A DNA stretch of 64,000 bases, taken from NCBI RefSeq assembly GCF_902459465.1, contig NW_022985734.1:1-64000 (forward strand). Direction: 5' to 3'. Position 1 is the stretch's first letter, and each line of letters opens with the position of its first letter. Below are positions 1 through 26,334 of this stretch, one piece after another. This DNA is from Asterias rubens (taxonomy: Eukaryota). The position numbers and the translations under genes were made by a program. Under the pieces are notes generated by a model. It searched no databases, had not been told where the DNA came from, and saw nothing but the letters and a program-made list of their open reading frames with translations.

Positions 1-1001
1 CTTTCTGAATTACGGTCCTTGTAAAGTAATAAAGTGCTGTATTTACGTGTAGACATCTTGTGCACTTCTATCAAGTCCCCAAATATCTCAAAAATTCCAG
101 ACAACAACCATCTAGAACTTCGCTTACATGATTCAAGACAACTTGCCTCACCACATTTGAGTTTTAGTAAAGATACAAATAAATCGTACATGTCTGCAAG
201 AAGAAACGCCTCATGACTGTTGCATAGCTTACAAATTTCCTTACAGGTCATGCAAAGTGCTGTTCTTGTGTGACATTTCTTTATGACTCTCTAAACTTAA
301 CTCAACATCCTCCAAACGTGTAACAGGTACTACTTTCCTTTTAGCCACAGAATAGCAAGTAAAGCAAAGAGAACTGAAAGTAGTAATTGTTACCTCGTCA
401 ATTGAAATATTTAGTTGCAGATATGCATTGTTAATATCCAGATTTGTACATGCATACCTTCTACAATTAACCAGAATGACACCACAAACCACACACTTTG
501 CATTTGACTGAATGTTGTATATGAAGATTTGTGTAAACTGCACAAAGAAACACAGCTTGGTATAAATAAACAGTCAATGGTTGGAAAACAGGATTGAAAA
601 GTTTCCAAAGAAATAGAGCTATCTGCCACTGAAACTGTTGAACACATGTCATATTTGTTAAGGTAACAAAGAGGTCTTTGCTTAGATCTTGTTTTTTCTG
701 GCGTATAGACTGGATTGTTACTTTTTTTTGTAAATTTGTGCCTGCATGCATTACAAATGCAACCATCCTCACTCAAATGTGGCAAGTAAGTTCTAAAATA
801 TTGTTTAACCTTTGAGTTGCTCAAGATGCTAAGATGGGTCCATTTTGTACTGGATCTTGAGCAAATTTGGCACGGACCACACTCAACTTTCTGACAAGGG
901 GGTCGAGCTCGTTTTGAACCCCCTTGAGATTGCTTCACCCCTGCAATGACATACGTTACCTCCTTGGCTTCCTGTTTTGTTGTTGTCCATTTGCCCATCA
1001 T
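1..1001 (-). pseudogene. N-terminal part of the Academ transposase (inverted copy) with 1-2 nt indels
   Basis: Starts MMGKWTTTKQEAKEVTYVIAGVKQSQGG at ATG 1001 and matches the 14543 ORF. Frameshifts near 525 (missing T) and 270 (missing CA) relative to the + copy. Confidence 0.8.
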
Positions 1002-1358
1002 TCCTCCAGGAAAACTTGACTGAAGCCTCCCAAGGTACCTGTGTAAAATGAATACGTGTATACACACTTAAATAACAAAACACACACGAACAAACAATGC
1101 AAATTAATGCTATAGTGCAGAAAGACTAAAACAAAAATATAAATGAACAGAAAAATAGATGAAATATTTGCAACAAAACAATCTTAAATCTTCTTGGCCA
1201 GGTGCTTCAAATTTGTTTGTTAAAACCTTTTCATTTCCAGGAAAGGAAAACATCTCAGTGCAGAAAAAAAAGTATCCATTGAAAATGCAACGTAATAAGG
1301 TTCTAAATTGTCAGACCTTACATGGCCAATTGAAAACCTTAATGATTGCTATAAAAAT

Positions 1359-2456
1359 TTATAAACTAACCTTCCATTTTCGCCGCCTCCGTCTTTTCAC
1401 GATTTGCTTTTTTCTTTTGCGTCGCCTCTTCCCTTGCTTGCGTGATGCAACATAAGGTGTCTCTGCCTTCGGAAGGCGCACTTGTTGGTGTGAAGCACCT
1501 CGAGAATGGTGAAAATTGCTGTTGACCTCCTCATACCGTATTGTGGCCATAGCCACATAAGGTTTGATGAAGTACATCACTGGTTTGGTACTAGACAAAC
1601 TCCTCCCAAGCTGCAAAAAACCTTCTCTGTCCTCGATGACTTGTCTTGACTTCCTCTGTTTTCTTGACATTTTGGGAGGCTTGGTTGTGACAGAAGGAGG
1701 AGGCTTAGTGGTGTCCGATGTCTTTGAGGTTGTACTGGAACTTGTGGGAGGCTTTGGGATGTCAATGCACCGCTTGGTCTTTGGGCATTTCGCTGAGATT
1801 TTCTTCCTCGGTGTTCGGACCAGTTTCTTCAGCTCATGTGGACAATGGGGTTGGGGTGTACCACGAGGGTCTATGGGTTTTGACATTTTCTCTAATTGCT
1901 TCTGTATAAGCCGGCTAAGAGGTAATTTCCGTCCCAGTTAAGATGAAGTCCATCTTTAGCAAGATGGCATTCATGGAACATGTCACTGAAATCTAAAAAC
2001 TTGCAATGTGAAAAATTGTGACAAATATTGGCCAGCTTAATATTGTGCATTACCCGAGATAGATTAAGTCGGCTATCATCTGAACGGGGTAAAATACCAC
2101 TTACCACTATCTCAGTAAGGGGGAAGTTTTCCCTTACAGTGGTAAGTAGTCTCCTGTAGGCTTGGATGTTGCTGTGAAGGAAGCCCTGTTCAAGGTTATT
2201 TGTTCCGACATGCAAAAATATAACGTCAGCAGTATGCAACTGATGGGCGTTATTAATAACATACTGACGAAGAATTTGCACAGTTGCCCCTCGACGAGTG
2301 TGCACGTCTGGGCTCAACAGGCAACTGTCAAAGTTCTCCCGCAAGTATTTAGTAAGGGAGTCACCCAATATCAGAGCACTAATCTTTCGAGGTGGTCCAA
2401 ACACAGGCTGTTGGGATGGTAGCTGTGGGTCTGGCCATTTCAGAGGTCGGCCTAAC
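1359..2456 (-). CDS. SGNH/GDSL hydrolase with a Thr/Pro/Lys-rich linker and a very basic C-terminal tail, encoded inside the Academ element
   Basis: SGNH blocks present: ILGDSL (catalytic Ser), RGAT, HVGTNN, DGLH (DxxH). Polypyrimidine tract plus CAG acceptor at 2457-2480. A 1-nt T-run deletion near 1918 splits ORFs 1892-2473 and 1359-1886; the + copy is continuous across this point. Confidence 0.85.
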
Positions 2457-3524: not shown

Positions 3525-3799
3525 CTTGTGTGCCACCTGAAGCGTGTGAGCATCGTGCCGTGTGCAAAAAGGGTCGTCGAACTCTCGCAGTTTATCGCGC
3601 AAATCGCGCAGTCGCTTCTGCACGTTGGCTGTGCAGATAAAACTCGGGATTTGACCTCATTAACGCACGCAGTGCGGACTGACTGTACACCAACCACTCC
3701 AAGCCCCACCAAACACTATCAGTCACTCTACCATCAACCCTTTCACAATAACAAGTGCCTACATACATTAGTCTGACGATAACGCATTAAGAATTCGTC

Positions 3800-5403: not shown

Positions 5404-5693
5404 ACCGGAGAACGGATGTACTCGTATGGTGTTGCTGATCAAACAAAGGATTGACTAGCCTCTCTTTTAAAATACTAACAGTTTTAAAATTCAAGCATAC
5501 AATACTTTTTATGGAACGATTTTTGTTTTTTTGATTTTTTTTGGCTGATTAGAACTAAACGGCTGGATCAATTTTAGGGTTTTGGAGTATATTTTTGTTT
5601 CCTTTAAAACAAAGTATACTTTGAGTTGTTTAACCGTTGATTTGTTTAGTCCTATTATAAATGTAGATGCATGCAATAAAACTAACATTTTAA

Positions 5694-6080: not shown

Positions 6081-6152
6081 TCAATAGCGTTGTTTAACTA
6101 TCTGAAATCTGGTCAATAATAATTTTCACCAATGCATGCAGTGAGTCAGTCC

Positions 6153-6218
6153 CAATCAGTCAATCAATCAATCAATCAATCATTCAAGCAATCAATCAAT
6201 CATTCAAGCAATCAATCT
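6153..6218. repeat. (CAAT)n microsatellite
   Basis: CAATCAATCAATC.. tract. Confidence 0.9.
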
Positions 6219-7391: not shown

Positions 7392-7733
7392 AGGAACATG
7401 TTGCCTTGGATCGGGCGAAGTGGTCTATAAAAAGCGTTTATAACCGTTTGTTAGAAAATGCATGTACAATACAATGATCCACACAATTTGCCTCGAACTG
7501 CGTTGTTTTTATTTTACTTTGCGAACTAAGACGGTCGGCCATTTATGAGAGTCAAAAATTTGACTCCCATAAAAAAAATGGCCGACCGTGTTAGTCGACC
7601 AATTTTGAGGCGTGTTTGTGTGTATCATTGTATTCTACTTTTACAACATCTTTCCATCCATATGTATTTTATAACAAACGGTAATAAACGCTTTTCAAAG
7701 ACCAACTCGGCCGATACTAGGCAACGTGTTCCT
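7392..7733. mobile_element. MITE with TTAA target-site duplication (Kolobok-like, AGG terminus)
   Basis: TTAA|AGGAACATGTTGCC ... GGCAACGTGTTCCT|TTAA. Confidence 0.8.
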
Positions 7734-8573
7734 TTAAAAATAAAATGATTTCATATATTATTAAAGGCTTCTTTTAAATTTGCTATAAAATTATTCAAAG
7801 GCGGCTTTTTAAACAGGGATTTGTTTTGCATAAATGAATAAACCAAATAAAGATTTGTTGCTACTTATCAATATTATATTAAGCTTATTTTGATAATTTC
7901 TTATGCAATCATGTTAAACATTTTGGGACATGGCAGCAGCGTACTTACCGCGTCATTCCATCTCGGTAATGTGTGCATGCTCAAATTAACCTGGTAAGCC
8001 TGCTGCCACCTAGTGTTCAAAGTCTCCCAGTAGGGACTGAGAGATAAATACCTTTTGTTGTTTTATTTTCCTTTATTTAAAAGTACTTCCCTTTTTTATG
8101 TTTCGGCAACTTTGGGGCAGGCAGCGTTGTCATTCAATTATTACAGGTGATACTCAAGACAATAAAACATTCCCATGAAATATGCAAATTGCACATCGCG
8201 TGTGGTTTGAGCAAACATGGTGGACATCAAGCCTTTTGTGTTTGGGTCTGATGGTGTAAGTGACGCATACGCGTTTGTGCGTCTTCCTAGTGCACGTTTA
8301 TCAGCCAAAGTGTCTGGTGAACATGTATAGTTGTACACATTCAAGCCGGGGCCCAATAACAAAAGAAGATACGGTCAACGGTTCGGTAAAGGTCCCCGGT
8401 TGGAAAACGTGTACAAAACCAATGGGAGCTGTTGCAAAAAAAGTTTGAGTAGGCCTCTATAAACAAAAGAGGGAGATTAGGACGTCCAAGGTTGCATACA
8501 TACACGAACTTGTTTGCGTTCATGTAAATAGTAACTTTCACAAGGGGCTAATTCCTACAAAGTTTTCCACATG

Positions 8574-11500
8574 TCAATGATTTTCTAAGTCATTGTTAAT
8601 GCTGGCCAGACGTGATCTCGATGTAGGTGTTGTACCGTCAGCCATCTGCAAGGATTCCTCAAACGGTCTGGGTAGAGTTGAGTACGGTGGGGGCGCCCCA
8701 GCTGGGTTCATAATAACCGGTGGATGGGGGTCCCTCGGGTAGTCTACTGCCCTCTCGGTAAACTCAAGATCGGTGTACTGATCTCCCTCTGAAGTGAACA
8801 TCGGGGCACCCCTACCCGGGTGACTTGAATCTGGAGTCGGTCGACGCTGATGTTGTTGTCGTGGGGGCCCGCCGCCCTCTTGTGACGTGTTCCTTGATCT
8901 GGATTGACTGGACCGATGAGGGCGCCGCACGCTGCTTTCTCGGGCCCGCTTGGAGCGAACCCTTTTCGCCATGAGGGCTAGAATAGTGAAGATGATGATC
9001 GCGAGGAGCACCACCATCAAGATGACAATGATGACGATCACGGTGATCCCCAAGCTGCTCCCCGCGGGACTTGGTGTACTGGCTGTGTGTAAAACAAATG
9101 GGAAGGTCAACGGATGTCAGAGGTCAGAGTTCATTTCTCATATCAATGAACATTAAATCACATTTAACAATGAAAAAGAAAACTTCAGAAAAGTTGTCCA
9201 TCTTCTTAACCATGCTGAAATTCTACCTGATCTTGAACCTCTTCTGTAACAATTTAACAATGGTTATAGAAGAGGTTCAAGATCATACAAGTAGAATTCC
9301 AGAATGGTTAAGAAAATGAACAACTTTTCTGAAGTACTTTGCTCAATCGGGTGCAAGCCGTGAAGGATTGGAGACATTTTATTAGAACAACACTCTGCCC
9401 CGGGATTATAGTCATGATCGTGTACATAACAGGCATAAGAGCATTGTAAATAAAGTCTCCATGAGCCAAGCAATTACAACTTGGTTTCACATAGTAAAAT
9501 AACCAGCAGCAATAACTGAAAGGGTCACCTAACAATAATACAACTTATAAGCACAAGGTAGAAATACAAACACATACTAAGGCCAAAAGCGTAAAAAAGT
9601 AAAATGTTATGTACCAAAAAAGACATTTAAACGAATTGTTACAGTATTTTGGGCAAGCTGGTGATGGTATTATTTCCTCTATCTCTCTGTGTTGCATTAT
9701 TAACTAAGTTTAAACTTTGAAGGGGTTAACAAGGAGCCGGTGTGGCAGGAGATTCTGTCCCCGGAGTTTCAGCCCCTCCCAATAACGTACGGCGATCTGT
9801 GTTTAGAAACTTCTTCTGAAGGCGCCCTCTTTTAAAACATCTTCCATCAGCTGAGTGACGTACACCACAAAACAACCGTTAGTTAAGCATTTACATGACC
9901 AGCGTCGTTTGCAGTACAACTTCACTGCGCATGCCATACGTACACCACCAAACAACCACTAGTTTAGCATTGGTACTTGCGCAAACTTGACCCGTGTGTC
10001 TACTGTAGTTGGTGACTCACCTAAACATCTGGGATCGCCCTCCTCCGAGTAAGAAGCACTGGGGCAGTTCTGCTCTCCGTCGCACACCAGACTCTTGTCA
10101 ATGCAGAACTGCGTATCGCGAGTCCCACTGACGTCACACTCATAGCAAGACCCATCTACGTTCAATTTAAATAAAATGATTCTTTGTAATAGCTAATTAA
10201 CTTAATTCATGTTTTAGTTCAGCTAAACTGTCATTTGGTAATTTGGTTAACTAGTAGTACTTTAGTTATGTAGGTAGGTAGGTAGGTAGGTAGGTAGGGA
10301 GGGAGGAGGTAGCTAGGTAGCTAGTCAGCCAGTCACTCACTTGTCGCTCACTTAGTCGCTCACTTAGTCATTCACGTAGTCACTCACTCAGTCACTTACT
10401 CAGTCCCTTAGACAGACACTCAGTCACTTAGTCAGCCACGTCGCTACTTCGTCACTTGGTAACTCGGTCACTCAGTAACTTGGTAACTCCGTCAGTGACA
10501 CACTTACTCTCGGTCGCTGAGTCAGTCACTCAGCCGGTCACTCACTCAATCTTTCAGTCACATAGTACTCAGTCATTTATACTTACCGGGTTCTGTTTTG
10601 AATGCTGTATAACTTATAGAAAAGGCACTATCTTCTCGAGACTGAACAGATCTCAGCGTTAGAAACACTTGGTTGCCAGTTGACTCAATGGGTTGGCTGG
10701 GTTTGACGAGGCCACATAAACCGTGGGGGAAGGTGGGTAAAAGTGACATAGCGCCCTCAGTGTTGCTCCCTAGAAACATCAGCCGATTTCCGCCTCCGCA
10801 CGTGTTCACGTTGAGGTTTGTAAGTTTGACTTCGTTAACGGTAAGACTTAGTCTGGTGCCCGGTGGTGAGAACAGGGCCAGGCTGCAGTTGAGGTCGGGC
10901 GAGAAACGAGGTATGGAGGAGAACACCTGACCTGATAGTGTGCCCTCGATCGTGTCGCCACAGCCTGTGAAGTTTGCAGACCGTGTTTGCATGTCCATGT
11001 AAGCTTAAATTCGAGGGGAAAAAATAAGTTTATTATAGTTAAAGGGTCTAGGTACTTTTTGTAGGTCACACAACACAATGTCCACATTAAACCAACACCG
11101 TATGAAGATAGCGATGGTAGAAAGCTTCCCAAGTCACCAAAATAATTTTCGTCTCAGGAGACGAAAATTATTTTAGCATGTAAAAAGTATTTTGGTGACA
11201 TTGTCTGCTTAAATGATTTTTTTCCCCAATTTTGCCCGATTTTAAAATAAAAATCAATTTAAGTGATATATGGCTACCAGTAAACAAGTAAACAACAATT
11301 AGTATAAACAATTGTTATTGGTTATGTTATTGTTATTATTATTGTAGGGTCATGTCACGTGAGAACAATTCAACCACAGTTCAAGGCCATCTCCAAATAT
11401 TCAAACAATTTATCATAAATGAGACATTATTGTGGATAGTTGGAAATTGAGGGAAATTGCTAAACTGCTAAGAGTGTGTTTCTTTAGCATGCAGTGCAGT

Positions 11501-12323
11501 TAGTTGCTGGTGTGGCAAGAGATCCGGTCCCCGGAGATTCGGGTCCCCCATATGGGAAACTGTGTACAAACTTCTGCTGATAGCGCCCTCTTTTGAATCA
11601 TCCTCCTCCAGCCCATGGTAGTTTTCCATTTAGGGGACAAAATCTCTAAAAGAAAGATTTCTCTTAGAGCACCGCCATCCAATTTGCTTCTCAAATGTGC
11701 CTCCTACGGGGTGCGACAAGGCCAAGATTATTCTACTTTCAAGGTAACCCGTACAACGCTTTGTGGGTTATAAACGCATAATTGGTAAACAAACAGAGAC
11801 TTGAGTATCAATTGAAACTCGCATCATAAATAAAGAATTCAAATTTTGAGTTGTTACCCATACACACCGATGAGTGTTAGCAATGTACACTCAATACTTA
11901 TACATGTACTAGTGGCATTAACAAACTGGGTCCAATTTCGTAGAGCTGCTTAAGCGCAAAAATAGCTAAGCAAAACAAACCTATAAATGCTTACCAGGAT
12001 AAGGTTACCAGCAGCACTACCATGTCACATGTACATTTTGAGACTGGTATCCTGCTCATTTCTGATAAGAAACGTTGAATATTATTCTGTATGTTCTGCT
12101 TAAGCACCTCTATGAACTTGGACCCTGATCTCAGGCACTTCGTATAATGATCTGCAGCTAATAAACTACTCTTAATGTTTAACTCTTGTTTCTCATTTAA
12201 AAGAAAATAAATGATTGACATAGATTCTAAGCAATACATTGGTATCTATAACGTGTACTCACCAACAGACCGGGTACGTACTGTGGTCAGCAAGCAAGCC
12301 ACAAAAGTCCACATCACGTTCAT
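8574..12323 (-). CDS. CUB + LDLa domain single-pass membrane protein with a cytoplasmic PPxY motif. Exons 12263-12323, 10587-11003, 10021-10155, 8574-9082
   Basis: Signal-like N-terminus MNVMWTFVACLLTTV. CUB domain (GCGDTI..DLNCSLAL..CG..GLCG..STGNQVFL..FSISY). LDLa-like exon (C..CIDKSLVCDGEQNC..SEE..C). Hydrophobic helix ITVIVIIVILMVVLLAIIIFTILALM, then APPPYSTL. All three introns are phase 1 with GT/AG. Confidence 0.85.
10274..10572. repeat. (TAGG)n microsatellite followed by a degenerate (GTCACTCA)-type tract
   Basis: Seen directly; intronic in the CUB-LDLa gene. Confidence 0.85.
11929..12124. mobile_element. MITE, PIF/Harbinger-like, CTG target-site duplication
   Basis: CTG|GGTCCAATTTCGTAGAG ... 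CTCTATGAACTTGGACC|CTG. Confidence 0.75.
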
Positions 12324-13046
12324 CTGACCTGTCCTTTTCATGTTTGAGAAAATTATATTGTCCCTGACGTTTCGATTACCAACAACAAGTTTTTTGGCTA
12401 GGGCCGATATTCCACGGCCGTTTGCTGTATCTTTTTGGGTTGGCCAAGGTAGCCAGTCAATATTGGTGGGAGGGACAACACAACAATTAAGTAGCCAAAA
12501 TCAATTTTAAGAAGTTTGAATTTTTAGTGTAGCGTTGTGTAATCCAGTATTACCGTGGAGGTACAACATACTGAACTGTATATACAGACGTTTGAGGTCC
12601 ACGGCCAAGGAGCGATGCCGTGCGTAATCCAGTAGCTGAATGTAGCCACCTGTTCAATGCTTTCTGCGTAACACCGGTAGCTGCAATGTTGCTGACGACC
12701 TGCGTAATACTAGTAGCTGTAAACTTGATTGGAATCATCTGCGTATTCCGGTGACTGAATGTTCCTGTCATTGGTTCCAATAAACTATAAACCAAGAATG
12801 ATTTCCGCACATTCCGGTAGCCCTGTGTCCGTTGATATAACAGCAGGTGTTCCATCAATGTTTACAAGTTAACATTAAGTTTACGTCCGCCATAGTAATT
12901 GTACATACAAAATGTGTCTGCCTTTATCAGATGAATTGTTGCGTTACAGTTTTATCTTCAGAATGAGCAAATGAGTCACTAATAATCCATCGAGAATGAC
13001 TAAACGTGGTTCCCCTCCATGCAAACCAATGGTGTTTAATACTCAC

Positions 13047-13310
13047 TTTTCAATCACTTGAAATACCATAATAACTCAAAGGAGAGCTTCACACACAAAA
13101 CATACACATTGAATCGATATTCTACTGGATACGTGGCTCTGTTCCCTTGAGTTTTTGAGTTTTCACACCGTGACGCAGAGTTTACGGGCACACCTTGGCA
13201 CAACAGCTCAACCAAACGATATTCTACTGGATACGTGGCTCTGTTCCCTTGAGTTTTTGAGTTTTCACACCGTGACGCAGAGTTTACGGGCACACCTTGG
13301 CACAACAGCT
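13047..13310 (-). other. Probable 5'-UTR exon of the CUB-LDLa gene
   Basis: GTGAGT donor on the minus strand at 13041-13046. The ATG-bearing exon has its own acceptor at 12329-12330, so an upstream exon is required. Confidence 0.45.
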
Positions 13311-13313
13311 CAA
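13115..13313. repeat. Perfect 97-bp tandem duplication (5-bp spacer) at the Academ junction
   Basis: 13115-13211 is identical to 13217-13313. Confidence 0.95.
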
Positions 13314-14117
13314 GCCTACAGGAGACTACTTACCACTGTAAGGGAAAACTTCCCCCTTACTGAGATAGTGGTAAGTGGTATTTTACCCCGTTCAGATGAT
13401 AGCCGACTTAATCTATCTCGGGTAATGCACAATATTAAGCTGGCCAATATTTGTCACAATTTTTCACATTGCAAGTTTTTAGATTTCAGTGACATGTTCC
13501 ATGAATGCCATCTTGCTAAAGATGGACTTCATCTTAACTGGGACGGAAATTACCTCTTTAGCCGGCTTATACAGAAGCAATTAGAGAAAATGTCAAAACC
13601 CATAGACCCTCGTGGTACACCCCAACCCCATTGTCCACATGAGCTGAAGAAACTGGTCCGAACACCGAGGAAGAAAATCTCAGCGAAATGCCCAAAGACC
13701 AAGCGGTGCATTGACATCCCAAAGCCTCCCACAAGTTCCAGTACAACCTCAAAGACATCGGACACCACTAAGCCTCCTCCTTCTGTCACAACCAAGCCTC
13801 CCAAAATGTCAAGAAAACAGAGGAAGTCAAGACAAGTCATCGAGGACAGAGAAGGTTTTTTGCAGCTTGGGAGGAGTTTGTCTAGTACCAAACCAGTGAT
13901 GTACTTCATCAAACCTTATGTGGCTATGGCCACAATACGGTATGAGGAGGTCAACAGCAATTTTCACCATTCTCGAGGTGCTTCACACCAACAAGTGCGC
14001 CTTCCGAAGGCAGAGACACCTTATGTTGCATCACGCAAGCAAGGGAAGAGGCGACGCAAAAGAAAAAAGCAAATCGTGAAAAGACGGAGGCGGCGAAAAT
14101 GGAAGGTTAGTTTATAA
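13311..14117 (+). CDS. 3' part of the SGNH hydrolase gene (from IQAYRR onwards; lacks the GDS and GTNN blocks at this position)
   Basis: Matches the minus-strand copy; retains DGLH and the basic tail. The first ~52 aa of the listed ORF 13155-14117 come from unrelated duplicated flank. Confidence 0.85.
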   Translation, partial: QAYRRLLTTVRENFPLTEIVVSGILPRSDDSRLNLSRVMHNIKLANICHNFSHCKFLDFSDMFHECHLAKDGLHLNWDGNYLFSRLIQKQLEKMSKPIDPRGTPQPHCPHELKKLVRTPRKKISAKCPKTKRCIDIPKPPTSSSTTSKTSDTTKPPPSVTTKPPKMSRKQRKSRQVIEDREGFLQLGRSLSSTKPVMYFIKPYVAMATIRYEEVNSNFHHSRGASHQQVRLPKAETPYVASRKQGKRRRKRKKQIVKRRRRRKWKVSL

Positions 14118-14478
14118 ATTTTTATAGCAATCATTAAGGTTTTCAATTGGCCATGTAAGGTCTGACAATTTAGAACCTTATTACGTTGCATTTTCAATGG
14201 ATACAGTTTTTTTTCTGCACTGAGATGTTTTCCTTTCCTGGAAATGAAAAGGTTTTAACAAACAAATTTGAAGCACCTGGCCAAGAAGATTTAAGATTGT
14301 TTTGTTGCAAATATTTCATCTATTTTTCTGTTCATTTATATTTTTTGTTTTAGTCTTTCTGCACTATAGCATTAATTTGCATTGTTTGTTCGTGTGATGT
14401 TTTGTTATTTAAGTGTGTATACACGTATTCATTTTACACAGGTACCTTGGGAGGCTTCAGTCAAGTTTTCCTGGAGGA

Positions 14479-17400
14479 ATGATGGGCAAATGGACAACAA
14501 CAAAACAGGAAGCCAAGGAGGTAACAATATGTCATTGCAGGGGTGAAGCAATCTCAAGGGGGTTCAAAACGAGCTCGACCCCCTTGTCAGAAAGTTGAGT
14601 GTGGTCCGTGCCAAATTTGCTCAAGATCCAGTACAAAATGGACCCATCTTAGCATCTTGAGCAACTCAAAGGTTAAACAATATTTTAGAACTTACTTGCC
14701 ACATTTGAGTGAGGATGGTTGCATTTGTAATGCATGCAGGCACAAATTTACAAAAAAAAGTAACAATCCAGTCTATACGCCAGAAAAAACAAGATCTAAG
14801 CAAAGACCTCTTTGTTACCTTAACAAATATGACATGTGTTCAACAGTTTCAGTGGCAGATAGCTCTATTTCTTTGGAAACTTTTCAATCCTGTTTTCCAA
14901 CCATTGACTGTTTATTTATACCAAGCTGTGTTTCTTTGTGCAGTTTACACAAATCTTTCATATACAACATTCAGTCAAATGCAAAGTGTGTGGTTTGTGG
15001 TGTCATTCTGGTTAATTGTAGAAGGTATGCATGTACAAATCTGGATATTAACAATGCATATCTGCAACTAAATATTTCAATTGACGAGGTAACAATTACT
15101 ACTTTCAGTTCTCTTTGCTTTACTTGCTATTCTGTCGCTAAAAGGAAAGTAGTACCTGTTACACGTTTGGAGGATGTTGAGTTAAGTTTAGAGAGTCATA
15201 AAGAAATGTCACACACAAGAACAGCACTTTGCATGACCTGTAAGGAAATTTGTAAGCTATGCAACAGTCATGAGGCGTTTCTTCTTGCAGACATGTACGA
15301 TTTATTTGTATCTTTACTAAAACTCAAATGTGGTGAGGCAAGTTGTCTTGAATCATGTAAGCGAAGTTCTAGATGGTTGTTGTCTGGAATTTTTGAGATA
15401 TTTGGGGACTTGATAGAAGTGCACAAGATGTCTACACGTAAATACAGCACTTTATTACTTTACAAGGACCTTAATTTCAGAAAGGCCTTGCATTTGTCAT
15501 GTGCCAAATTACGGTATCATTCTAAAAGAAGTGGGGATGAGATGTTCTCTGAAGATTTTAAACCCACATTAAATTCTGAAAGAGATATCAATAAGATGGC
15601 TCTTTATTTCCTGCCTCATATAAATAGAAAACTCAAGCACCAATCTGGAGAGATCACTAAACACTACACACAAAATCTAATGGAAACTGGCTCTTTTAAC
15701 TTTGATTCCCTGTTCGACATGATTGACCCAGAAGTGTGGAATACTGTTTCTTTGTTGACTGCAAACAACGATGAGTTAAAATATTTCAGTGAATGTGGAT
15801 CATTGTTTGGAAATGGCAAGCTTGTTTTCCCAAGCTACTCAAAACCACATGGAAGACAGCGACGCAACAGAAGAATAATTCTCATTATGGTTATGCAGTT
15901 CACTTACAATGAATCCAACAACTATCCATTTCATATTGTCATTGCAAATTGTGTGAAACGACTTTCACATTCATCAAAACTAATTAAATTGTTGAATCAG
16001 TCTGGCTTCTGCACTTCTGAAGACACTTTAGATAGATTCTTAGAAACCATAAAACAGCTTCGCCAACAGTCGGGTTTACTTTCTACACTAGAATCCAATA
16101 CTTTTACCATAGTAAGTGTTGATAATATTGATGTTCTTGCTAGCAGTGCTGCAGTCACATCACAGGGTTTAGGAAGAAGTTGGCATGGAACATCGGTCAT
16201 GGCACAACAGCCAAAACCCTTGACAGAAAAACTCTCCCCCACTGGAGAACTGATTGACATTATTGGACAAAAATCTTCTCCAATAACCTCTGACTTTCAA
16301 ACTGTACAAGTATATGGAGATGGGCGTTGCCTGTACAGATGCATTGCATCTTACAGCAATTCCAATATACTACTTTGTAAACGGAATGAGGTTGGTATAC
16401 CTGTTGATCAAACTATGTTCCATTTAGAGCAGCAATTTGCAGATTACTTCAGATATTCTGTTTGTCAACATTTAGAACAACATCTCGAACTTTTAGAAGA
16501 ACTTCCAGAGGGAATTAAACAGGTGCTTTTGGAATCTTCAAATGATCAATTTTATTCTTCATTTTCTGAAAAAGTTGCTGATGGCAGAAACTCTGGCACC
16601 TATGCTGGTCATTTGGAGATGTGTTCTCTAGCATGTGTATTACGTACAGATATATGTGTTTATCAGAAAACTGTCCACGGTCTGACACTAGTTGCAAGAT
16701 ATCCCACTAAGCCAATGTCCATGTATCACATCTGTTTACTGTACCGTCCCGGATCAAATGCTATTACAAGTCATTTTGATTTAATGTATCATGGTAGTTG
16801 TCGACCAAACTGCCAAATTCTACTTGATACAAATGACACAACATTCAATAAATGGCATGATGGAGTAAAAGGTTTTGGAGGTTTGATAAAACCAAATTTA
16901 CTAGATTTTGTTTCGGGTAGTCCACAAGAAGCTATCCAGAGGACATGTGATGACAGGCAATTGCATCCTCAGGCTTCTGCTGATGGTGAGGAAACGAGTA
17001 GTTCATCTGAACGTTATTTTACACCATCATTGATCATGGACGCACCCAAAAAACCTTCAGTAAGAAGAAAACTTAGCCCATCAAATCTCAACGTTCCTGA
17101 AAAAGGACATTTTGCTACCCCATTTTTCAAAACTTTCATTCGTCAACAGTTGTCAGTGAGTACTTTTTTTCCATCTGGCGAAGAAAAGCTTCAGCAGAAG
17201 CAACTTCACTATGACATGTTTATGCACATTTCAGAAAGATACGTTTCTGTTGTTGATGTAACAAAACATACTGTCCCTGGACTGAAGTGTAACATGTTAC
17301 TGCATTCAAAGGCCCGATGTAAAAAATCAAAGTTTTCTTACATTTATGTACTCAATGAGAAAGCTGACTGTGCTCAAACTGTAAAATCGGTCATTGGTCT

Positions 17401-20400
17401 TCTGTATGACCTTTTCAAAATTTCAAAATCCATTAACCACCTCGTTATTGCAGGTGATGGTGCAACAGTTAAGATATTGTTGGATGTAAAGAAAGAATAT
17501 GGTGAAGTATTGGACTGGGTTATACCCTATTTAGGTGATTGGCATGTATTGAAGAACTTTCAAGAAGTTGTAATGAAAGTGTTTTGGGATGCCGGCTTAA
17601 AGGACATCGCCAAGTTAACCCACAAAAATAGTACCTTGAACAATTTGAAAACTTGCAGTAATTTCAAAAGAACACATAGGTTTCTATTACAAGTTTATGA
17701 GGCAATTTATGTTCATCAATTCAAGTGTTTTCTGGATTGTAGAGATGGAAAAGATGAAAGTTCCATCTCTAATGAAGCTTTCCATAAAATTGTCACAAAC
17801 GTTGTGGAGCAAGTGCATATTCAAGGTGATTTCTGTGATTATTTTGATATTGAGGAGTTTGTGTCTAAGGTACATATGCCACTTCATGGGTGTCTACCAA
17901 CTTTGCTTGATGAATTCAATGAATTTTGTATCAAAATGGCTGAGAAGTATGAAACTTTCAAATTTTGGAATAGGTTTCTGAAAGAAGATTGTTTCTGCTA
18001 TATTCAGTTGTGGATAGCCATGCGAACGGGTAATTGGAATTTGCGTCTAGGTGCCCTAAAAGAAATGGGTCCTTTATTCCATGCCTTTGATAGGCAGAAC
18101 TACTCTAAAATGATTCCAATTCACCTGAGTCAAATGCATGGCCTACCAACCTACATATTAGACCATTTCAGAAACGGGGCGTTTGTTTCTAGTATACGTG
18201 GATTTAACTTTTCATCTGTTGGGATAGATGAAGCTCATGAAATGCTGATTAACAAAGACTGTAAAATGGCACTGTCTAGAAGCTTACCAACAAACATGGA
18301 AAAAATTTCCGGAACCTTGGAGTTTCAGGCTCAACTCCTTGACAACTTTCAAAGTCAATTGTCTGATTCTATTTTTAAACCTCTTCAGAGAGATTTTGCT
18401 CCATCTGTCATAATGTCTGAATTACAAAATGTTAAGGCATATTTTTCAAAGGTTTCCAGTTGTTCTATGTTCAGTGAAGATCAAGCACATACTCTTTACC
18501 ACCCTTTTGAACACACACCTGCCTCTGCAGTTCAACAGAAAGCTCTACTATCATACAGAGAGGTTGGAAACTCATCTTACGACACTTACGTGCGATTTAA
18601 TATTTTGAATGAAACCAGCACTGCCAAACCTGTCATTAGAAAGCATAGGCTGAAAACATTTGCCAAAGACAAAGTAACGAAGAGAACGATAAATTACTTA
18701 GAAAAGGAAAAAAAAATGATTACTCTTTGTTACAAAAGAACAATCTCATTTTCTGAACAGCACAACCAGCCTATTCATCAGCTTTTCCAATTTATTGAAA
18801 CTCCTCGAGCACTATGTACTCCTTCAGGCTTGCCGAGCAAAGGGGCTAAGTATATTATGTATAACCTCTTTGGCAAGAGATATTCACAATCATTTTCACC
18901 TATCACAGAGAACCACACTTTCCCACCTGGGACCTGTCTAATTGCAGAAGGAATGAACATCATATACATTAATCCACTGCCTGGTTTTAGATGTTTTGCA
19001 GAATATGCTTCGCTCATTGTGTCAAGATGGGTAACACCCTTTTTCAAAAAAAAGTATAAGGAAGTACGAATTCTCTTTGACCAGGTTCGCTCGCAAGGAA
19101 TCTCTCCAAAGGGCTTTGAGAGAGAACGACGAGATGCTGGCCAAGATGACGATATTGAAGTGTTTGATTCAATAACTGATCAAACACCTCTGCCTCAAAA
19201 TTGGTCAAAATTTCTCAAAGTGCGAACAAATAAACGAAAGTTATGCCAATATCTGTCTAATAAGTTAATAGACATTGTTTCAGCATCTTTTCAAACAACA
19301 GATCAAAAGTTTGTCACTTCTGGAGGTTTTCTGTCCAATGCCCCCGAAAGAACAGAATGGACAGGCAAATGTGTTACCTTGGCTGGCATATCATCACACA
19401 GTATCATTCATAATCATGAAGAAAGTGATACCCAAATATGGTTACATGTTAATGATACATCATGCTCATATGTTCATGTTTACTCTGTAGACAGGGATGT
19501 AGGCATGATAGGTTTGCCGTTATCTTTTGAGGGTAAAATAATAACAATTCAGTACAAGGCATCTGGAACTGATGACAAATATCTAAACCTAAACATACTG
19601 AGAACTGCATTAAGCAGAGATTCAGATCTGGCCCCACTAGTGAAGCATGGTTGCGATGTTCACAAAATAATGCAAATGCTATATATTTGCACTGGCTGTG
19701 ATTTTGTATCTTACTTTGCAAGACTTGGAAAGACAACATTCCTGAAAGTGTTTCTTCAGTTTGCAGAATTTATTTCAGGAAGTAGTTCTACTCAAACTGA
19801 TGGCCAGTTGTGTTTTGATGATGTACAATTTAACCATGATCGAGGGCTTCTTTCGTTTTATCGATTGGTTGGTTGTGTTTACTTCCAAGCCAACCGTGCA
19901 TCTTTGAATCAACATGCTAGTAATCCTGTAGAACTATTTGATAGCATTCAGTCATCTTCCATTGTAGATCATCATTCAAAGTTTCTTTCCATTATCCGTA
20001 AAGCTTCTTGGCAAGGTGTTTATGAAGACACTCTTCTTCCTTCCGACACTGCACTGTCTTTTCACTGGCTGAGGTCATGTTGGGTGAGCCATGTTTGGGG
20101 TAAATCACTCCAACCAATTTTTAATTACCCTGACTTAAACTTATATGGATGGGAGCACATTCTTGATTCTGGAGAGGTAACAATTAAATGGGATTCTACA
20201 TCAAATATGGAGAGAATACGTAAAAATGTACTTCACTTAACCAGAGGTTGTTCATGTGCTAAGAACAAATGTTCAAGTCGCCAATGTAAGTGCAAAAAAA
20301 TTAATGAAGCATGTGGCCCAGGTTGCACATGTAGAAATTGTGAAAACCGTCCTGTGCAAAGTACGCCAATTGTCTCTGTTCAAGATGGTGAGCAAACATT

Positions 20401-20557
20401 TTCTGATGATGAATCGGTGAGTTCATCCATCAGCTTAATTGGTGATGATCATGAATTAGATGAAGATGAGGTTCTTACTATATCAAGAAAGGGTCAAGAA
20501 GTGCAAGTTGTTGACAACCCATTTTCAGATGATAGTTTGTCAGGGGAGGAGTTTTAG
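14479..20557 (+). CDS. Academ transposase: Cys clusters - DDE core with inserted OTU domain - XPG/FEN1-like nuclease - Cys8 (CXC) finger - acidic tail
   Basis: DDE-like motifs IVSVDNID, IAGDGAT..LGDWH, SVGIDEAHEMLINK. XPG/PIN-like motifs IAEGM, LFDQ, K.FERERR, HEESDTQI, SVDRDV, TGCDFVSYF..GKTTF (H3TH). C-terminal GCSCAKNKCSSRQCKCKKINEACGPGCTCRNCEN. This matches the known AcademX architecture. The likely start is ATG 14479, with a 1-nt insertion near 14526 relative to the inverted copy. Confidence 0.82.
16270..16800 (+). other. OTU-family cysteine protease (deubiquitinase-like) domain within the transposase ORF
   Basis: VYGDGRCLYRCIA (Asp/Cys loop), YAGHLEMCSLA..ICVYQ, ICLLY..SHFD (His plus Asp). 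Confidence 0.8.
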
Positions 20558-22050
20558 TATTTACAGCAGTTAATTGTGTACAGTTGGTTGTCTTCTTCAT
20601 ATTTTCATAGTTGCTTTCAGTGATGACAAAAAGGTATGTTTTATCTAGATATATTCATTGTGTATTGCCCAAACTGTTGTGCCAAAAACTTACATCTTGT
20701 ATAATCGTTTATGTATATTGTCTTAATATGTGTTTTATGATGAGTGTGGCCCAAAATAGATATAAGGTTAAGGTGTTGTGTTTGTGCTAAAAATGTTTTA
20801 GATAATTTGGTTATATCCCAAGATGGGATGCCAGATATTGTAAATGTATGGATAACAAGCAGCTCCATCATTGTAAATTACGAGTTATCGTGTAATATGA
20901 TTTTTAAAGTATCTTATATGAACATGTGTTTAAGTGTTTAGAAAAGTGGTGCTTAACATTTAAAAGTAAGAAATATGGAAGCCCCTGAAACTTAGTTGAT
21001 GCATCTTTAGTGCAACACTTACATTACATTTCTCAACTATTTATTTTGCCAAAGAAACTGTAAACATTGCCAATGTAATGGGAAGAACTTGCCATACAGT
21101 TTATTTTTTGTGTTAACCTTATTTTATATAATTTGATACCTTGAAACATTATACAAAGTGTCATTTTAAATTAACTTGCAATGGGTATATAATTTTTTTT
21201 TTAGTTGAACAAGTTTTGAGGTACAGTTGTTACTACCGACAATGTTGAAGTTGGTACATTTTATTAATTTTAAGTGGAGCAGCTGAATATTATTAACTTC
21301 TCATTTAGCAATAAACTTTGTCATAAAAGGTTCATTTAAACATTGCCAACCTACGGGTAAGAACTTACCAAAGATACCTTGCAATGATGTCATGTATTAT
21401 ATTTGTGATTGTTTACTTTCATGTTTAAAATTAAGTTAAGCTAGCTTGCCATTGAACAGTTTGTCTTATAAAAGTATGCGGGTATAAAGTTTACTAAAAC
21501 TTGTTTTTGGTAGCTATTTTGTATTAATGTCAACAGGTGAACTAGCTCTGTTACACGTACCAAATATGTAAATACATTTTTGTAACAAGACCATTTAAAC
21601 ATTGCCAACCTACCAGTTACCACTTACCAAAGATCTTTTATATTTATATTTTTTATTACATCTGAACTTTTTTTGAACTGTGCCTTAACTTTGATAATTA
21701 TATAGTGTTACATGTTTGTGCAGTGTATGTGACTTAAAATAAAGGAACAGTTGATACGAAACAAATCTTATTCTGCTCACTAGAGTTTTTGTGTATCGAG
21801 CATAAAGTTTTATAAAGACTCAAACAAAAGGGCTTCAACCTTGTACCAAGTCATTCCTGACCAAAATTTAAAAAAAATTCTTCTGTCCTTCAAAATTTAA
21901 CCTTTTGTTAAATTAATAATACTCAGACCATCAACCCCTTTTAAATTATATCCTTAGTTCTCCAAGTACCCTAAAATCGTCCATACAAAATGTGCTTAGG
22001 CACCATTCCTTCCCCAAAGACCCGCCAAAAATACCCCCCCCCACCCTTCC

Positions 22051-22085
22051 CCAAAAAGACAAACCCCAAACAATCGGGAACACTA
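22051..22085 (+). repeat. Candidate 3' terminal inverted repeat of the Academ element
   Basis: See the 3387-3418 entry. Confidence 0.5.
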
Positions 22086-22737
22086 TAGCTAACAGTGGTC
22101 ACGAACTTTGTTTACATGTACATCCGGGTACGTACACTGGATGAGTGTGACGTTTCGCGGTTGACCAATCAGCGATCAGAAAATCCATAAGCAAACATGG
22201 CGGCGTATTCACCAAGAGACGTTAACGTTAAATTATGAGAAGTGTTGGCAAAACGAGCGCCCTGACTCAGCTAAATGAAATCAAATGTAAAAAGCTCAGC
22301 GTTTGGATAGAATATAACATTATCTATTCGGTAAGCCCAAATATACGTTGTGGTAGCATTGACAATTAATAGTTACCTCCATGTTTTACGAAGCAAACTG
22401 TTTCGTTTTGAAACACAATTTTCGAGTCCATTTTAGTACTAATAATTGCCAGCAAAATCATTAATTTGTACAACTGGATTAAAGGTCGGTTATTCATCTT
22501 TATAAATCTGTAAATATATTGACAGAAAATTACTTTGATCACATGAAATTGATGAAATTCCTGAGACTACACCACGCTCATTAAATATTCATGGAGAGGT
22601 CAAGCTCCCGAAACTCGTGCATACGCTGCAGATAAAAGAAACGGATATTGTGTGCAGTGCGGACTGACTGGCTATAAAACAGGAGATTGGAACTCATCAA
22701 TACGTATGTTGGGATAAACCAGCCCGAATATACTTAA

Positions 22738-23128
22738 AGGCAGACACTATTGGTAATTACTATTGGTAATTACTCAAAATAATTATTGGCATAAAACCGT
22801 TCTTGATTACGATTAATGGGGAGAGATTGATAGTTTAAAACATTGTGAGAAACGGCTCCCTCTGAAGTGACATAGTTTTCGAGAAAGAAGTAACTTTCCA
22901 CGAATTTGATTTCGAGACCTCAAGTTTAGAATTTGAGGTCTCGAAATCAAGCATCTGAAAGCACACAGCTTTGTGTGACAAGGGTGTTTTTTTCTTTTAT
23001 AGTTATCTCGCAACTCTGACGACCAATTGAGCTCAAACTTTCACAGGTTTGTTATTTTATGCATATGTTGAGATACACCAAGTGAAAAGACTGGTCTTTG
23101 ACAATATTACTAATAGTGTCCAGTGGCT
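22738..23128. mobile_element. Abundant TTAA-flanked MITE (Kolobok-like; TIR AGGCAGTGGACACTATTGGTAAT)
   Basis: TTAA|AGGCAGACACTATTGG ... ATAGTGTCCAGTGGCT|TTAA. Other copies or fragments at 23357-23659, 25650-25880, 30578-30960, 35930-36080, 42020-42297, 48098-48630, 50173-50527 and 51818-52180. Confidence 0.85.
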
Positions 23129-23167
23129 TTAATTGATGATCCCAAAATTGTTGTTATTGGTTTCCAG

Positions 23168-24418
23168 GTGTGTAGCTAAGTATAACGGTAAAAAGATTTA
23201 TCTAGCGGGAACCGGAACCGACTACAGTGAATTCCTGGACAATGCAGGAGGTAATTGCTTTAATAATCCAAGTTAAAGTTCGCTAAAAACAAACCACCAG
23301 AAAGTTTTGAATAGCGAAACATTACACAGCATAGATCAAGGGGAATGGTTATTTAAAGGCAGTCAAGTATAACACTATTGGTAATCATACTCGAAATAAT
23401 TATTAGCTTAAAAACTTACTTGCTAACGATCAATGGAGAGCCGTTGATAAGTGTAAAACATTGTGGGAAACAGCTCCATCAAGCATCTGAAGGCACACAG
23501 ATTCGTGTGACAGGGGTGTTTTATTCTTTCATTATTATCTCGCAGCTTCGACGACCGCTTGAGCTCAAATTGTCACAGGTTTGTTATTTTATACATTATG
23601 TTGAAATACACCAGGTGATAAGACTGGTCTTTGACAATTACCAATAGCGTCCATTGTCTTTAAATGTAAACATTTGTGGGTTCCTTTTTTATTAGATGAC
23701 GAGAGGATGTATAGCTATGTCCGATTCCAGGATGTGGATGGAACAACGGGCGCACGAAAAAAAATGTATGCTTTCATAACGTGGATTGGACCGAGTGTAA
23801 GCCCCCTTGCTAAGGCCAGAGTCAGCACGGACAAAGCCTTCGTTAAACAAATATTTACCGTAAGTATCAATTATGGTTTTATTTAATTTAAATGGTTTTA
23901 ATCTTAATTCAGCTGAAGCCTTTTTTTTATGGATCTAGAAGCACACAAAGTAGTGCAACTAGGGTGTTTTTTTTTCTTTCATTATTTTCTTGCAAATTCG
24001 ATGACCAACTACATGTTCACAGTGAGTATACTGTTAATTGACAATATTACCAAAGGTGTATCCAGTGCCTTTAAAATCTGATTTGTTTTCATGATGTTCC
24101 TAGTATGATGCTATACACTATACATTTTCAGCCCGCTGCTGGCTTGCTACGCTCTCCCCATAATTATGCTCAGATTTATTCACATTACATTTTAAGGGAA
24201 CATAAGTACATTATGTATTTGAAGTTAATGCAATTCTTCTGTTATCACAAATAAACAATGTTTTCAATGATCTAACACTTTGTCTTATATTGTGTCCTTT
24301 TTTTCGTCAGAATTTTGGCAAGGAAATCTTAGCTGACGATGCTAGCGAGTTAGCTGAAGCCAAGGTCTTAAATATTCTGTTAAAGGCAGAAGGCGCAGCA
24401 TACGGAACTGGAAAATAG
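23168..24418 (+). CDS. COTL1: Coactosin-like protein (ADF-H domain), exons 2-4: 23168-23250, 23696-23859, 24311-24418; exon 1 not found upstream on this strand
   Basis: (W)CVAKYNGKKI..GTGTDYSEFL..DDERMYSYVRF..KKMYAFITWIGPSVSPLAKARVSTDKAFVKQIFTNFGKEIL..KAEGAAYGTGK*. Intron phases 2/1/0 are mutually consistent. Confidence 0.85.
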
Positions 24419-26334
24419 AGGGCGGTGTTTCAAGGCTTATTTCTCTTTAAAATGAAACCATGGATTTGTCTACAACACAGTGACTGGACATGCGTGTTTA
24501 AAATTATGGTTATTGGTGTTATGGTTTATTTGTTTTACATATGGTTGATTTGGTTATTACATGTTTTGGTTGATGGGTTATTACATGGTTGATTTTTATT
24601 ACATGAATGGTTTATGTTTACGTTATGTTTTTTTTTTATCACATTGGTTGTTATTATTACATTTATAGTCTTTATTACGTTATGAGTGATACAAATGTAT
24701 TCAAAACAGCCAATTAATAATTGTTTACACACGACGTGCTGTACACAGACTATGTTCAGTTTTCATCCAGCCACAATAATCTTGTTATTTGAAATGTTAA
24801 ACTCGTTGCGGATTTTTTGTACAGATCTGTATGAGTTAACACAATGTACTTCCCTGACATTTTTTAAAATTTCAAAGATTATGCTAAACAGTCTAACTTA
24901 TGTAACTTTGAGCGCAGTTTGCTCAAGACATAGATTTGGTTACAGGGGACTTATACTTTGTGACTTAATTTTGAGAAAACTGCGCTCAAAGTATATTTAG
25001 AATGTTTATCAGTGTGTAATTAACGAGACACTCAAATAACTAGATCGTTGTAATCTTTTGAAAACTCAGGTACAAACATTGTGTACAGCAATTGTCGTAT
25101 GTAAACAATTTGACTGTTTTTAAAAACAGGAGAGGACAAAGTTGTTTGAACTTTCTGCCATGCTGACTTGATCATGAGAACATCAGCAAAATTACTGACA
25201 TTACACTACATATTTATTGAACCACTTTTTAATGTAGTGTGGCGTCCAACATCAGTCTAGAGTCAAACTCAAGTTCTGACGGCTGCCTGCGTCATCGGAA
25301 CACAGAGTGTGGGTTCGACTCCTGCTTGACACTTTCTGTATGTTTTTAATTACACAGGGGTAAATGCATGGGTCCATTTAGTTAAAAGACCTTTGGAATT
25401 TTTTTTTTAATACAAGCAAACTTAATCTGTTGTGGCTTTATTTCACAATAATAGTAGAAATGGCTGTTTACAAACTTCCAACCAAACCTGTTAATGTTTT
25501 TATATGGAGCTGGTCAACTGATGTAATTGTCTTTTGAGGATGATTAAAGTTAATTTAATTGATTTGAATTGAATTCAATTCTTTTTCGTGCAACGCGCCC
25601 CATACCTTTTTAACTCATGTATACAGTCGGCAATATTTATCTTATAGACACTGGACACAACGGGTATATTGTCAAAGACCAGTCTTCTCACTTGGTGCAT
25701 CTCAAAATAAGCATAACATAACAAACCTGTGAAAATTTGAGCTCAATCAGTCGGCGAGGTTGCAAGATGTTAATGATGAAAGAAAAACACCCCTGTGACA
25801 CGAAGTTGCATGCTTTCCGATGCTTGATTTCGCGACCTCAAAATCTAATTATTATGATGTCTCGAAATCAAATTCTTTGAAAATTACTTCTTTCTATGAC
25901 TGGCAACTAGTTACCGATTTATGCTCGTATGTGTTTTATAACACACCTCGGTCTTAAATTAATGTGGCATAAGAAAAGAAACTTGGAAAAGAAAGGAAGC
26001 TTTTTAGGTGTGTTATAAATAAAGTTAATTACCTTTACAGACGTTGAAACTAGCACATAATTGACATGACTGGCAATGAGGTAACCTGTGCACGTCTATT
26101 CCTCGAGGGGCTTTTAGTGACCAGAAGAGCGACCAATTTCCCGAGACTGAAGGCCGAGGGAAATAGGCCCCTGTTCTGGTCACTCACAGGCCCGAAGGGG
26201 GAGTAGACGTACACTAGCTACCGAATTATGCCCGCCAAAATGTGTTTTATAACACACCTCGGTCTTAAATTAATGGAAGCTCTTTAGATTCATATCACGG
26301 TCCACGTCAAGAGAGGGCGCTGTAACCAGGCACT

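Follow-up and report, generated by a model that had tools for sequence, protein, structure and literature searches.

Can a complete enzyme of another class be housed inside the catalytic fold of a DNA transposase? Transposases are usually pictured as a DNA-binding part and an RNase H-like cutter, with extra domains at the ends or in one known loop. The question is raised by a 64,000-nucleotide stretch of the Asterias rubens genome (NCBI RefSeq assembly GCF_902459465.1, contig NW_022985734.1, positions 1 to 64,000 of the forward strand; hereafter the window), which carries an unbroken 2004-codon frame for a putative Academ-type transposase. From the N- to the C-terminus, this frame encodes a Cys-rich region, a split DDE core with a nested OTU domain, a FEN/XPG-type nuclease and a CXC domain, that is, at least five modules that are predicted to be joined by disordered linkers. 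The initial annotation, made from the sequence alone, had placed an OTU deubiquitinase-like domain inside the DDE core on account of its GDGRC, YAGHLE and SHFD motifs, and these lie where it had located them in the frame. The best explanation, which we consider likely, is that a genuine OTU domain is nested in an excursion between strands β2 and β3 of an Academ DDE fold and is carried by the transposase as an accessory isopeptidase.

The OTU domain and its place in the predicted DDE fold

A Pfam scan of the protein matched OTU (PF02338) over residues 592–734 (E = 9e-5) with 23.4 bits against a gathering threshold of 23.3, and precomputed PF02338 matches exist for several homologues. A phmmer search of the OTU region alone against the PDB gave no match, so that a profile was needed. 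The profile of 20 homologues aligned over the OTU region (26–62% identity) matched 36 distinct PDB sequences, all 36 of which are OTU-family proteases; the best match was OTUD5 (E = 1.2e-5), and others included OTUD3, OTUB2, OTULIN and nairovirus OTUs. In the profile alignment, the GDGRC loop falls on the catalytic DGAC loop of OTUD5. Residues G594, C596, R599 and H744 are invariant in 20 of the 20 homologues and D593 is nearly so, with the DGxC loop heading a helix. Residue 746, two positions past the His, is Asp or Asn in 19 homologues and Gln in the remaining one.

Structure prediction gave the same picture. In an AlphaFold2 model of residues 440–1262, built from a 46-sequence alignment (model 1, in which model residue 1 is protein residue 440), the mean predicted local distance difference test score (pLDDT) was 84, and it exceeded 93 in the OTU part. 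All of the 50 best Foldseek matches of model 1 in the PDB were OTU domains (probability 1.00; template modelling score by target 0.55–0.69). VIA-align gave Z scores of 12.7 for OTUD1, 12.5 for OTUD3, 12.0 for both the viral OTU (vOTU) of Crimean–Congo haemorrhagic fever virus (CCHFV) and yeast Otu2, and 11.9 for OTUD2, with 132–148 residues aligned over model residues ~122–313, mostly 140–313 (protein residues 579–752). On profile and model evidence, the OTU domain is real, as had been proposed, and its predicted Cys/His/Asp arrangement is that of active OTUs.

The strands on either side of the OTU domain were assigned from model 1 (residue numbers of the model in this paragraph, unless stated). 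Strand β1 (84–93) carries D88 and D91, which correspond to protein residues D527 and D530, and the invariant RSWHGTS motif forms β2 (107–117). Beyond the OTU domain and a disordered stretch (359–406, pLDDT <50), helices lead to β3 (491–498), which is followed by α1 (505–518), β4 (528–532), D533 (protein D972), α2, β5 (554–558) and α3, while E791 and E794 (protein E1230 and E1233) lie in a helix at 789–805. A Pfam match to DUF6589 covers protein residues 893–1236 (E = 6e-11). In VIA-align, the DDE part matched the P-element transposase (Z 10.4, 322 residues aligned over 21..823), Hermes (Z 9.2), ISCth4 (Z 9.0), Tn5 (Z 8.3) and RAG-type transposases (Z 7.1). About a dozen retroviral and Ty3 integrase cores scored Z 6–7, with alignments that start at 50–81 (most at 77–81) and end at 822–823. 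In the integrases of human immunodeficiency virus type 1, Rous sarcoma virus and prototype foamy virus, the first catalytic Asp lies 8–12 residues into the aligned range and thus falls on D88/D91, indicating that the strands before the OTU domain belong to the catalytic sheet. The model therefore places the OTU domain between β2 and β3 of a canonical RNase H-like DDE fold, and its position between the first and second catalytic Asp, which had been deduced from the motifs, is borne out in structural terms. We also considered D942 as the first catalytic Asp, which would put the OTU domain outside the core. This invariant residue was rejected because it follows β3, near helix α1, and precedes D972 by only 30 residues, and because the related cores align from the D527/D530 strand.

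Table 1 Features of the transposase frame, the upstream gene and the element ends (positions in the window)
Feature	Residues	Positions	Strand	Remarks
Second, inverted copy of 13311–15476		8..2164	−	99.4–100% identical; leaves the window at its left edge
SGNH/GDSL gene, fuller copy		1359–2473	−	on the inverted copy
5′ terminal inverted repeat, second (inverted) copy		3669..3685	−	from the match of the joined copy to the 10,883-bp contig
SGNH/GDSL hydrolase gene, 3′ two-thirds (exon 1)		13311..14105	+	copy cut at 13311
GT..AG intron, SGNH frame to transposase leader		14106..14441	+	336 nucleotides; spliced contig, run X18 (labelled ‘RNA?’)
GGGGTGA		14540..14546	+	SGNH stop 14544–14546 overlaps transposase GTG 14543–14545; conserved in three lineages
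Transposase frame	1–2004	14543..20557	+	GTG start; first ATG is codon 98
Predicted strands β1 and β2, RNase H-like fold	523–556	16109..16210	+	model strands 84–93 and 107–117; invariant columns
SVDNID motif	525–530	16115–16132	+
Candidates for first catalytic Asp	D527, D530	16121–16123, 16130–16132	+	invariant
OTU cysteine-protease domain	~579–752	16277..16798	+	~175 residues; profile, Foldseek, VIA-align, pLDDT >93
GDGRC motif	592–596	16316–16330	+
YAGHLE motif	687–692	16601–16618	+
SHFD motif	743–746	16769–16780	+
Putative OTU catalytic residues	D593, C596, H744, D746	C596 16328–16330; H744 16772–16774; D746 16778–16780	+
Post-OTU linker	753–870	16799..17152	+	poorly conserved, largely disordered; tail of the insert
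Predicted β3, β4, β5 with helices α1 and α2		17330..17533	+	second catalytic Asp D972 (17456–17458) at end of β4
AGDGAT motif	970–975	17450–17467	+
Predicted all-helical insertion domain		17645..18172	+	between β5/α3 and the Glu helix; model helices 596–771
DEAHE motif		18230..18241	+	candidate catalytic Glu E1230/E1233, invariant or near-invariant
FEN/XPG/XRN-type 5′ nuclease	~1465–1853	18935..20101	+	model, Foldseek, invariant columns
CXC domain (tesmin/LIN54 type)	1901–1936	20243..20350	+	the ‘Cys8’ of AcademX
3′ terminal inverted repeat		22654..22670	+	17 bp, ending ...GGACTGACTG; element end at 22670

Relatives with and without the OTU domain

Word-indexed searches yielded 54 homologous proteins, all of which were aligned with the query, from Patiria, Acanthaster, Asterias, Amphiura, sea urchins, Owenia, amphioxus and many marine assemblies. 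A stretch of ~165–180 residues stands opposite query residues 575–750 in 22 other relatives (24 sequences with the query and its cluster representative). In 28 relatives the OTU domain is absent or almost absent; these proteins, which include those of Strongylocentrotus and Diadema, are typically 1724–1792 residues long and mostly retain 1–15 residues, and up to 58 in one case (P0025), opposite the same 176 query residues. The flanks are conserved in both classes, with VSxDNxD and RSWHGTS..QQPxP on one side and KKPSxRR..FKT on the other, so that the basic KKPSxRR motif of the post-OTU linker is common to the OTU-less relatives. Proteins without the domain still hold ~200 residues between β2 and β3, which indicates that the long excursion predates the OTU domain that now sits within it.

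A maximum-likelihood tree of 48 rows, built from the conserved parts with the insert left out, requires at least four gains or losses of the OTU domain, with OTU-less clades nested among OTU-bearing ones. When the tree was rooted at its midpoint, the OTU-bearing amphioxus and Owenia sequences and a 10-member clade were basal in one major clade, and OTU-less lineages were nested three times, including as the sister group of the query’s own clade. The simplest reading is one old gain followed by repeated clean losses, three of them under the midpoint root, with the reservation that gain and loss are not strictly separable because the root is not established.

Constraint was compared between the query and its two closest lineages with DNA sequence. 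The nonsynonymous divergence (dN) was 0.32–0.42 in the OTU domain, 0.60–0.75 in the adjacent linker, 0.17–0.22 in the post-OTU DDE core and 0.23–0.26 in the nuclease. The ratio of dN to synonymous divergence (dS), put forward earlier as a check, was informative in part: the dN contrasts and a few values of the ratio (omega) were usable, but dS was saturated, and the window copy differs from the independent public contig described below (L002) at only 6 sites of the transposase frame (2 synonymous, 4 not), too few for the purpose. These sequence comparisons show that the OTU domain is under purifying selection and yet is dispensable for the Academ family.

Two further sets of relatives are worth recording. 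The closest sister element, whose protein (P0003) is 66% identical to the query, occurs with an identical 1960-residue protein on 13 marine metagenome contigs (L003–L008), two of which bear TARA names; a second young family, hosted by some planktonic or larval animal, is thereby suggested. The same OTU subfamily was also found at the N-terminus of a hAT-like (DUF4371) protein (P0062), and P0055, which has a weak Mab-21-like match, contains three tandem OTU-like repeats, at least one of which lacks the catalytic Cys. These two proteins indicate that the OTU module has passed from one transposon superfamily to another, and perhaps also to host genes.

Candidate roles of the protease and the upstream SGNH gene

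If the nested domain is what its fold suggests, it would be an active deubiquitinase, or would act on a ubiquitin-like modifier instead, and flexible linkers would hold it at the back of the DDE fold. The transposase would carry it as a dispensable accessory. The domain could keep this very large transposase from ubiquitin-dependent turnover, or it could remove ubiquitin, where the element makes double-strand breaks, from chromatin or from repair factors. We regard the chances as about even that the OTU domain is an active isopeptidase whose target is the transposase itself, in cis, or ubiquitinated chromatin or repair factors close to the breaks that the DDE and FEN-type nucleases produce.

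Several points weigh against the nested accessory isopeptidase. The Pfam support obtained from the single sequence is marginal, and the strands were assigned from a predicted model and from alignment ranges rather than by residue-level superposition. Three proteins of one Academ clade (P0029, P0031 and P0032) have YGCGRC for YGDGRC, with Cys replacing D593, and that of Asterias amurensis (P0033) has HFQ for HFD; a change of specificity or decay is possible in these variants. The substrate of the OTU domain may be ubiquitin, ISG15, NEDD8 or a peptide bond in its own protein. Repeated loss of the OTU domain implies that the DDE chemistry has no need of it, and its omega, ~0.10 where dS was computable, is a rough value, dS being otherwise saturated or undefined. 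The frame itself opens with GTG, has an in-frame TAA (14522–14524) seven codons further 5′ and reaches its first ATG only at codon 98, and the copy that bears it stops at 13311 as assembled, without the 5′ 1.5 kb and the 5′ inverted repeat of the element.

The start of the frame is closely bound up with the gene upstream of it. An SGNH/GDSL hydrolase gene lies 5′ of the transposase in the window (13311–14117, + strand), in L002 (1207–2322), in an Acanthaster locus (L001, 4466–5983) and in a metagenomic locus (L003, 1539–2870), and this gene order recurs in orthologous elements of other sea stars and of marine metagenomes. On this sequence evidence, the hydrolase gene is a conserved passenger of the Academ lineage in three divergent, sea-star-type hosts, in line with its earlier assignment to the element. 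The fuller copy of the gene in the window has its GDS, GTNN and DGLH blocks intact. The protein has a long basic tail rich in Ser, Thr, Pro and Lys, and in the left window copy the reading frame shifts near 1917 when it is compared with the right copy and with public contigs.

A contig from run X18, which is labelled ‘RNA?’, joins 14105 to 14442. Spliced in this way, the SGNH frame continues for 34 further codons to the TGA at 14544–14546, with the transposase in the −1 frame relative to it. The sequence CAG GGG TGA (..Q G stop) is kept in the Acanthaster and L003 lineages, and in its NCBI model the upstream gene of Acanthaster terminates at the same TGA. Two other introns were considered and rejected: a 20-nucleotide GT..AG mini-intron (14521–14540) is not found in the RNA contig, whose joint keeps the in-frame TAA, and a 435-nucleotide intron to an acceptor at 14540, which would supply an in-frame ATG, is contradicted by the same joint. 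In runs depleted of ribosomal RNA, the whole element was covered unspliced at a depth of 112–144 with flanks below 10, a pattern to which DNA carry-over may contribute. The N-terminal 439 residues of the transposase (14543–15859) contain conserved CGPCxxC...H and CxCxxCR motifs and have no Pfam match; this region of ~440 residues is probably a DNA-binding zinc module, and its first Cys-rich motifs are all encoded 5′ of the first ATG.

The −1 frame at GGGG together with the overlap of stop and start makes a ribosomal slip or termination–reinitiation possible. That both proteins are made from one spliced mRNA, the transposase by either of these routes at GGGG-UGA, with coupled expression or a four-enzyme polyprotein that needs the OTU domain, is an unlikely proposal. 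Such a polyprotein would unite an esterase, a DDE transposase, an OTU protease and a FEN-type nuclease, and the nested OTU domain would be needed for its processing or for its protection from degradation. The conserved overlap with the SGNH gene is a separate instance in which unusual translation of a DNA transposon could be tested.

A related alternative is that the OTU domain is mainly a self-processing endopeptidase that cuts the giant protein, perhaps an SGNH–transposase fusion arising from a putative frameshift at GGGGTGA. The OTU-like proteases of arteriviruses and tymoviruses perform both polyprotein processing and deubiquitination, the transposase comprises at least five modules with disordered linkers between them, and the conservation of the SGNH/transposase overlap, with the −1 frame, in three lineages makes a polyprotein conceivable. 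However, OTU-less relatives share the multi-module architecture without such a protease, no conserved Gly-Gly-type cleavage motif was seen, although no search was aimed at one, and in structure the domain is as close to cellular OTUD-type deubiquitinases as to viral enzymes. We therefore consider self-processing as the main role to be improbable.

The domain could also be a non-catalytic ubiquitin-binding or purely structural module, as the replacement of D593 by Cys or of D746 by Gln in some lineages and the repeat without a catalytic Cys in the related P0055 would allow. Against this, all 20 Academ OTUs retain C596 and H744 across deep divergence, and the constraint on the OTU domain is clearly above that on the neighbouring linker; we hold this alternative to be improbable as well, and the accessory isopeptidase continues to be the preferred explanation.

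The element, its assignment and known systems

A canonical element of 10,881 bp is obtained when the reverse complement of 2165–3685 is joined to 13311–22670. It matches the independent public contig of 10,883 bp (L002) end to end at 99.75%, which fixes the termini. The 17-mer GCAGTGCGGACTGACTG (+ strand) precedes both 3685 and 22670 as a perfect repeat, beyond which the flanks diverge, and a subterminal 11-mer is common to both element ends. The inverted copy at the left of the window, which comprises the 5′ part of the transposase and the SGNH gene and continues to 3685, forms a ~2.2-kb inverted duplicate ~11 kb from the studied copy.

The break at 13311 adjoins a 102-bp tandem duplication (13112–13315), and contigs of four public runs leave the window at 13218–13311 to continue with the canonical upstream sequence. 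Either two head-to-head copies have truly been rearranged with each other at this junction, or the assembly is wrong there. In the window, one copy keeps its 5′ end and the other its 3′ end, and no target-site duplication is common to the flanks of these two ends; the Acanthaster locus and L003 each lack one terminus. Inversion of 2165–13310 was tried and rebuilds the canonical element, yet the resulting flanks (TGTA and GCTA) show no duplication.

The element is near-identical across public DNA and RNA runs. Its contig has a depth ~4× that of the flank in one DNA run, and in runs filed under five organism codes at least 88% of sampled words were recovered, with 10 differences from the window in ~5,200 positions. 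The family is young, low-copy and present in RNA runs. The earlier suggestion of a young, possibly active element thus applies to the family; this copy itself lacks the 5′ end, the inverted repeat there and a conventional ATG. The truncation at 13311 beside the tandem duplication, the perfect inverted duplicate and the divergence of public contigs across 13218–13311 could suggest a domesticated host gene or an assembly artefact instead of a mobile element, but an independent contig bounded exactly by inverted ends, the raised depth, the near-identical element under five organism codes and the occurrence, in other sea stars and marine metagenomes, of orthologous elements whose genes stand in the same order effectively exclude this.

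Beyond the 3′ end of the element, the region 22880–25900 contains a cluster of ~530-bp direct repeats (22946–24059) with inverted partners at 25666–25895, which looks like a separate fold-back repeat or one of the miniature inverted-repeat transposable element type. Runs of 500 N bases occupy 26335–26834 and 58966–59465.

The C-terminal half of the protein bears on the assignment to AcademX. A second model (residues 1290–1960; pLDDT 82, predicted template modelling score 0.80) matched XRN1/XRN2/Rat1, T5 flap endonuclease, FEN1, EXO1 and Rad2/XPG in Foldseek, with E down to 6e-6, and the carboxylates D1513, E1627, D1629, D1650, D1652, D1693 and D1720 are invariant among 41 homologues. The tesmin-type CXC domain is sub-threshold in Pfam for the window protein; Pfam TCR is matched in 36 of the 41 homologues, and LIN54 (5fd3) was matched at E 6.5e-6. 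The architecture of DDE, XPG and Cys8 that the initial annotation had recognised therefore holds at the level of predicted folds, and profile search and structure prediction support the FEN/XPG-type fold as they do the OTU domain. The tentative assignment to Academ rests on this architecture, the DUF6589 match and the spread of DUF6589 in animals and fungi, DUF6589 being taken here as the Academ transposase domain. AcademX elements encode a nuclease and make target-site duplications of 3–4 bp, and AcademH elements encode a helicase (PMC10045372). The Pfam scan of the 2004-residue protein detected no helicase.

In the predicted structure, strands 2 and 3 of the catalytic sheet are separated by an entire enzyme of a different class, and the fold seems to be left intact. 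Relatives with and without the insert provide a ready-made natural experiment on the tolerance of the DDE fold for insertion and on the part of a ubiquitin-type protease in transposition; the latter question dates back to the first finds of OTU and Ulp1 domains on Ginger, Mutator and Helitron elements. Because RNA runs contain this young family, its natural protein could be expressed and assayed directly.

The initial annotation’s view that this combination of modules was undescribed proved overstated, as databases already contain automatically annotated proteins with OTU and DUF6589 from Patiria, Amphiura, Owenia and others, and a fusion of OTU with a DDE transposase has been published for Ginger1 (PMC2836005). 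OTU was also among the accessory-domain filters of a survey of fungal DNA transposons (PMC5751038). Full-text literature searches, whose scope did not extend to Repbase or Kojima 2020, returned no paper linking Academ to OTU or XPG, and DUF6589 turned up in a single paper, on an unrelated subject. Relative to the papers searched, what is new is an OTU domain in Academ, a protease nested between β2 and β3 and the natural insert-free sisters; the occurrence of OTU on transposons is itself known.

Compared with the cellular OTUD-type and nairovirus OTUs (OTUD1, OTUD3, OTUD5, Otu2 and CCHFV vOTU), the Academ OTU domain has a likewise minimal core of ~150 residues, with a DGxC Cys-loop and an HxD His-loop (Z 11.5–12.7). 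It differs from them in its sequence, with only 12–20% identity, in a characteristic RN..G.P insert after the Cys helix and in being embedded in a transposase. In P-element, hAT (Hermes) and RAG-type transposases, a large helical domain is inserted between β5/α3 and the Glu helix, as it is predicted to be here. In those proteins the insertion follows β5 and is not another enzyme class, whereas the present protein would contain a second, independent insertion, that of a protease, between β2 and β3.

With the AcademX lineage of the Academ superfamily (Kapitonov & Jurka 2010 and Kojima 2020, as cited in PMC10045372 and PMC5751038), the window element has in common one very long transposase, in which a DDE RNase H-like domain, a nuclease within the C-terminal half and a Cys-rich domain at the end are combined at the level of predicted folds, as well as animal hosts and short terminal inverted repeats. 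The window element adds the nested OTU domain and the upstream SGNH hydrolase gene, and the sea-urchin homologues of 1730–1740 residues represent the OTU-less form of an AcademX-type protein. Helitron and Helentron elements are likewise eukaryotic DNA transposons with an OTU domain, including in echinoderms (PMC2836005; PMC4067079; PMC11417382), but they use a rolling-circle Rep/helicase without a DDE fold, and their OTU is a terminal or separate module; in the Pfam scan of the window protein, neither a Rep HUH endonuclease nor a Pif1-type helicase was detected.

A published counterpart is Ginger1 (Bao, Kapitonov & Jurka 2010), a cut-and-paste element of marine invertebrates in which a DDE transposase is fused to a C-terminal OTU or Ulp1 domain that is, as here, optional within the group. 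The OTU and Ulp1 domains of Ginger1, Mutator and Helitron have been proposed to act in ubiquitin-dependent repair or turnover (PMC2836005), which is the kind of role considered here. The rve domain, which with the GPY/F motif is a hallmark of Ginger1, has no Pfam match in the window protein, whose best structural matches are P-element and hAT transposases, with integrase cores reaching only Z 6–7. In Ginger1, the OTU domain is appended C-terminally to a Gypsy-type integrase, whereas in the Academ/DUF6589 transposase it is predicted to interrupt the catalytic fold itself.

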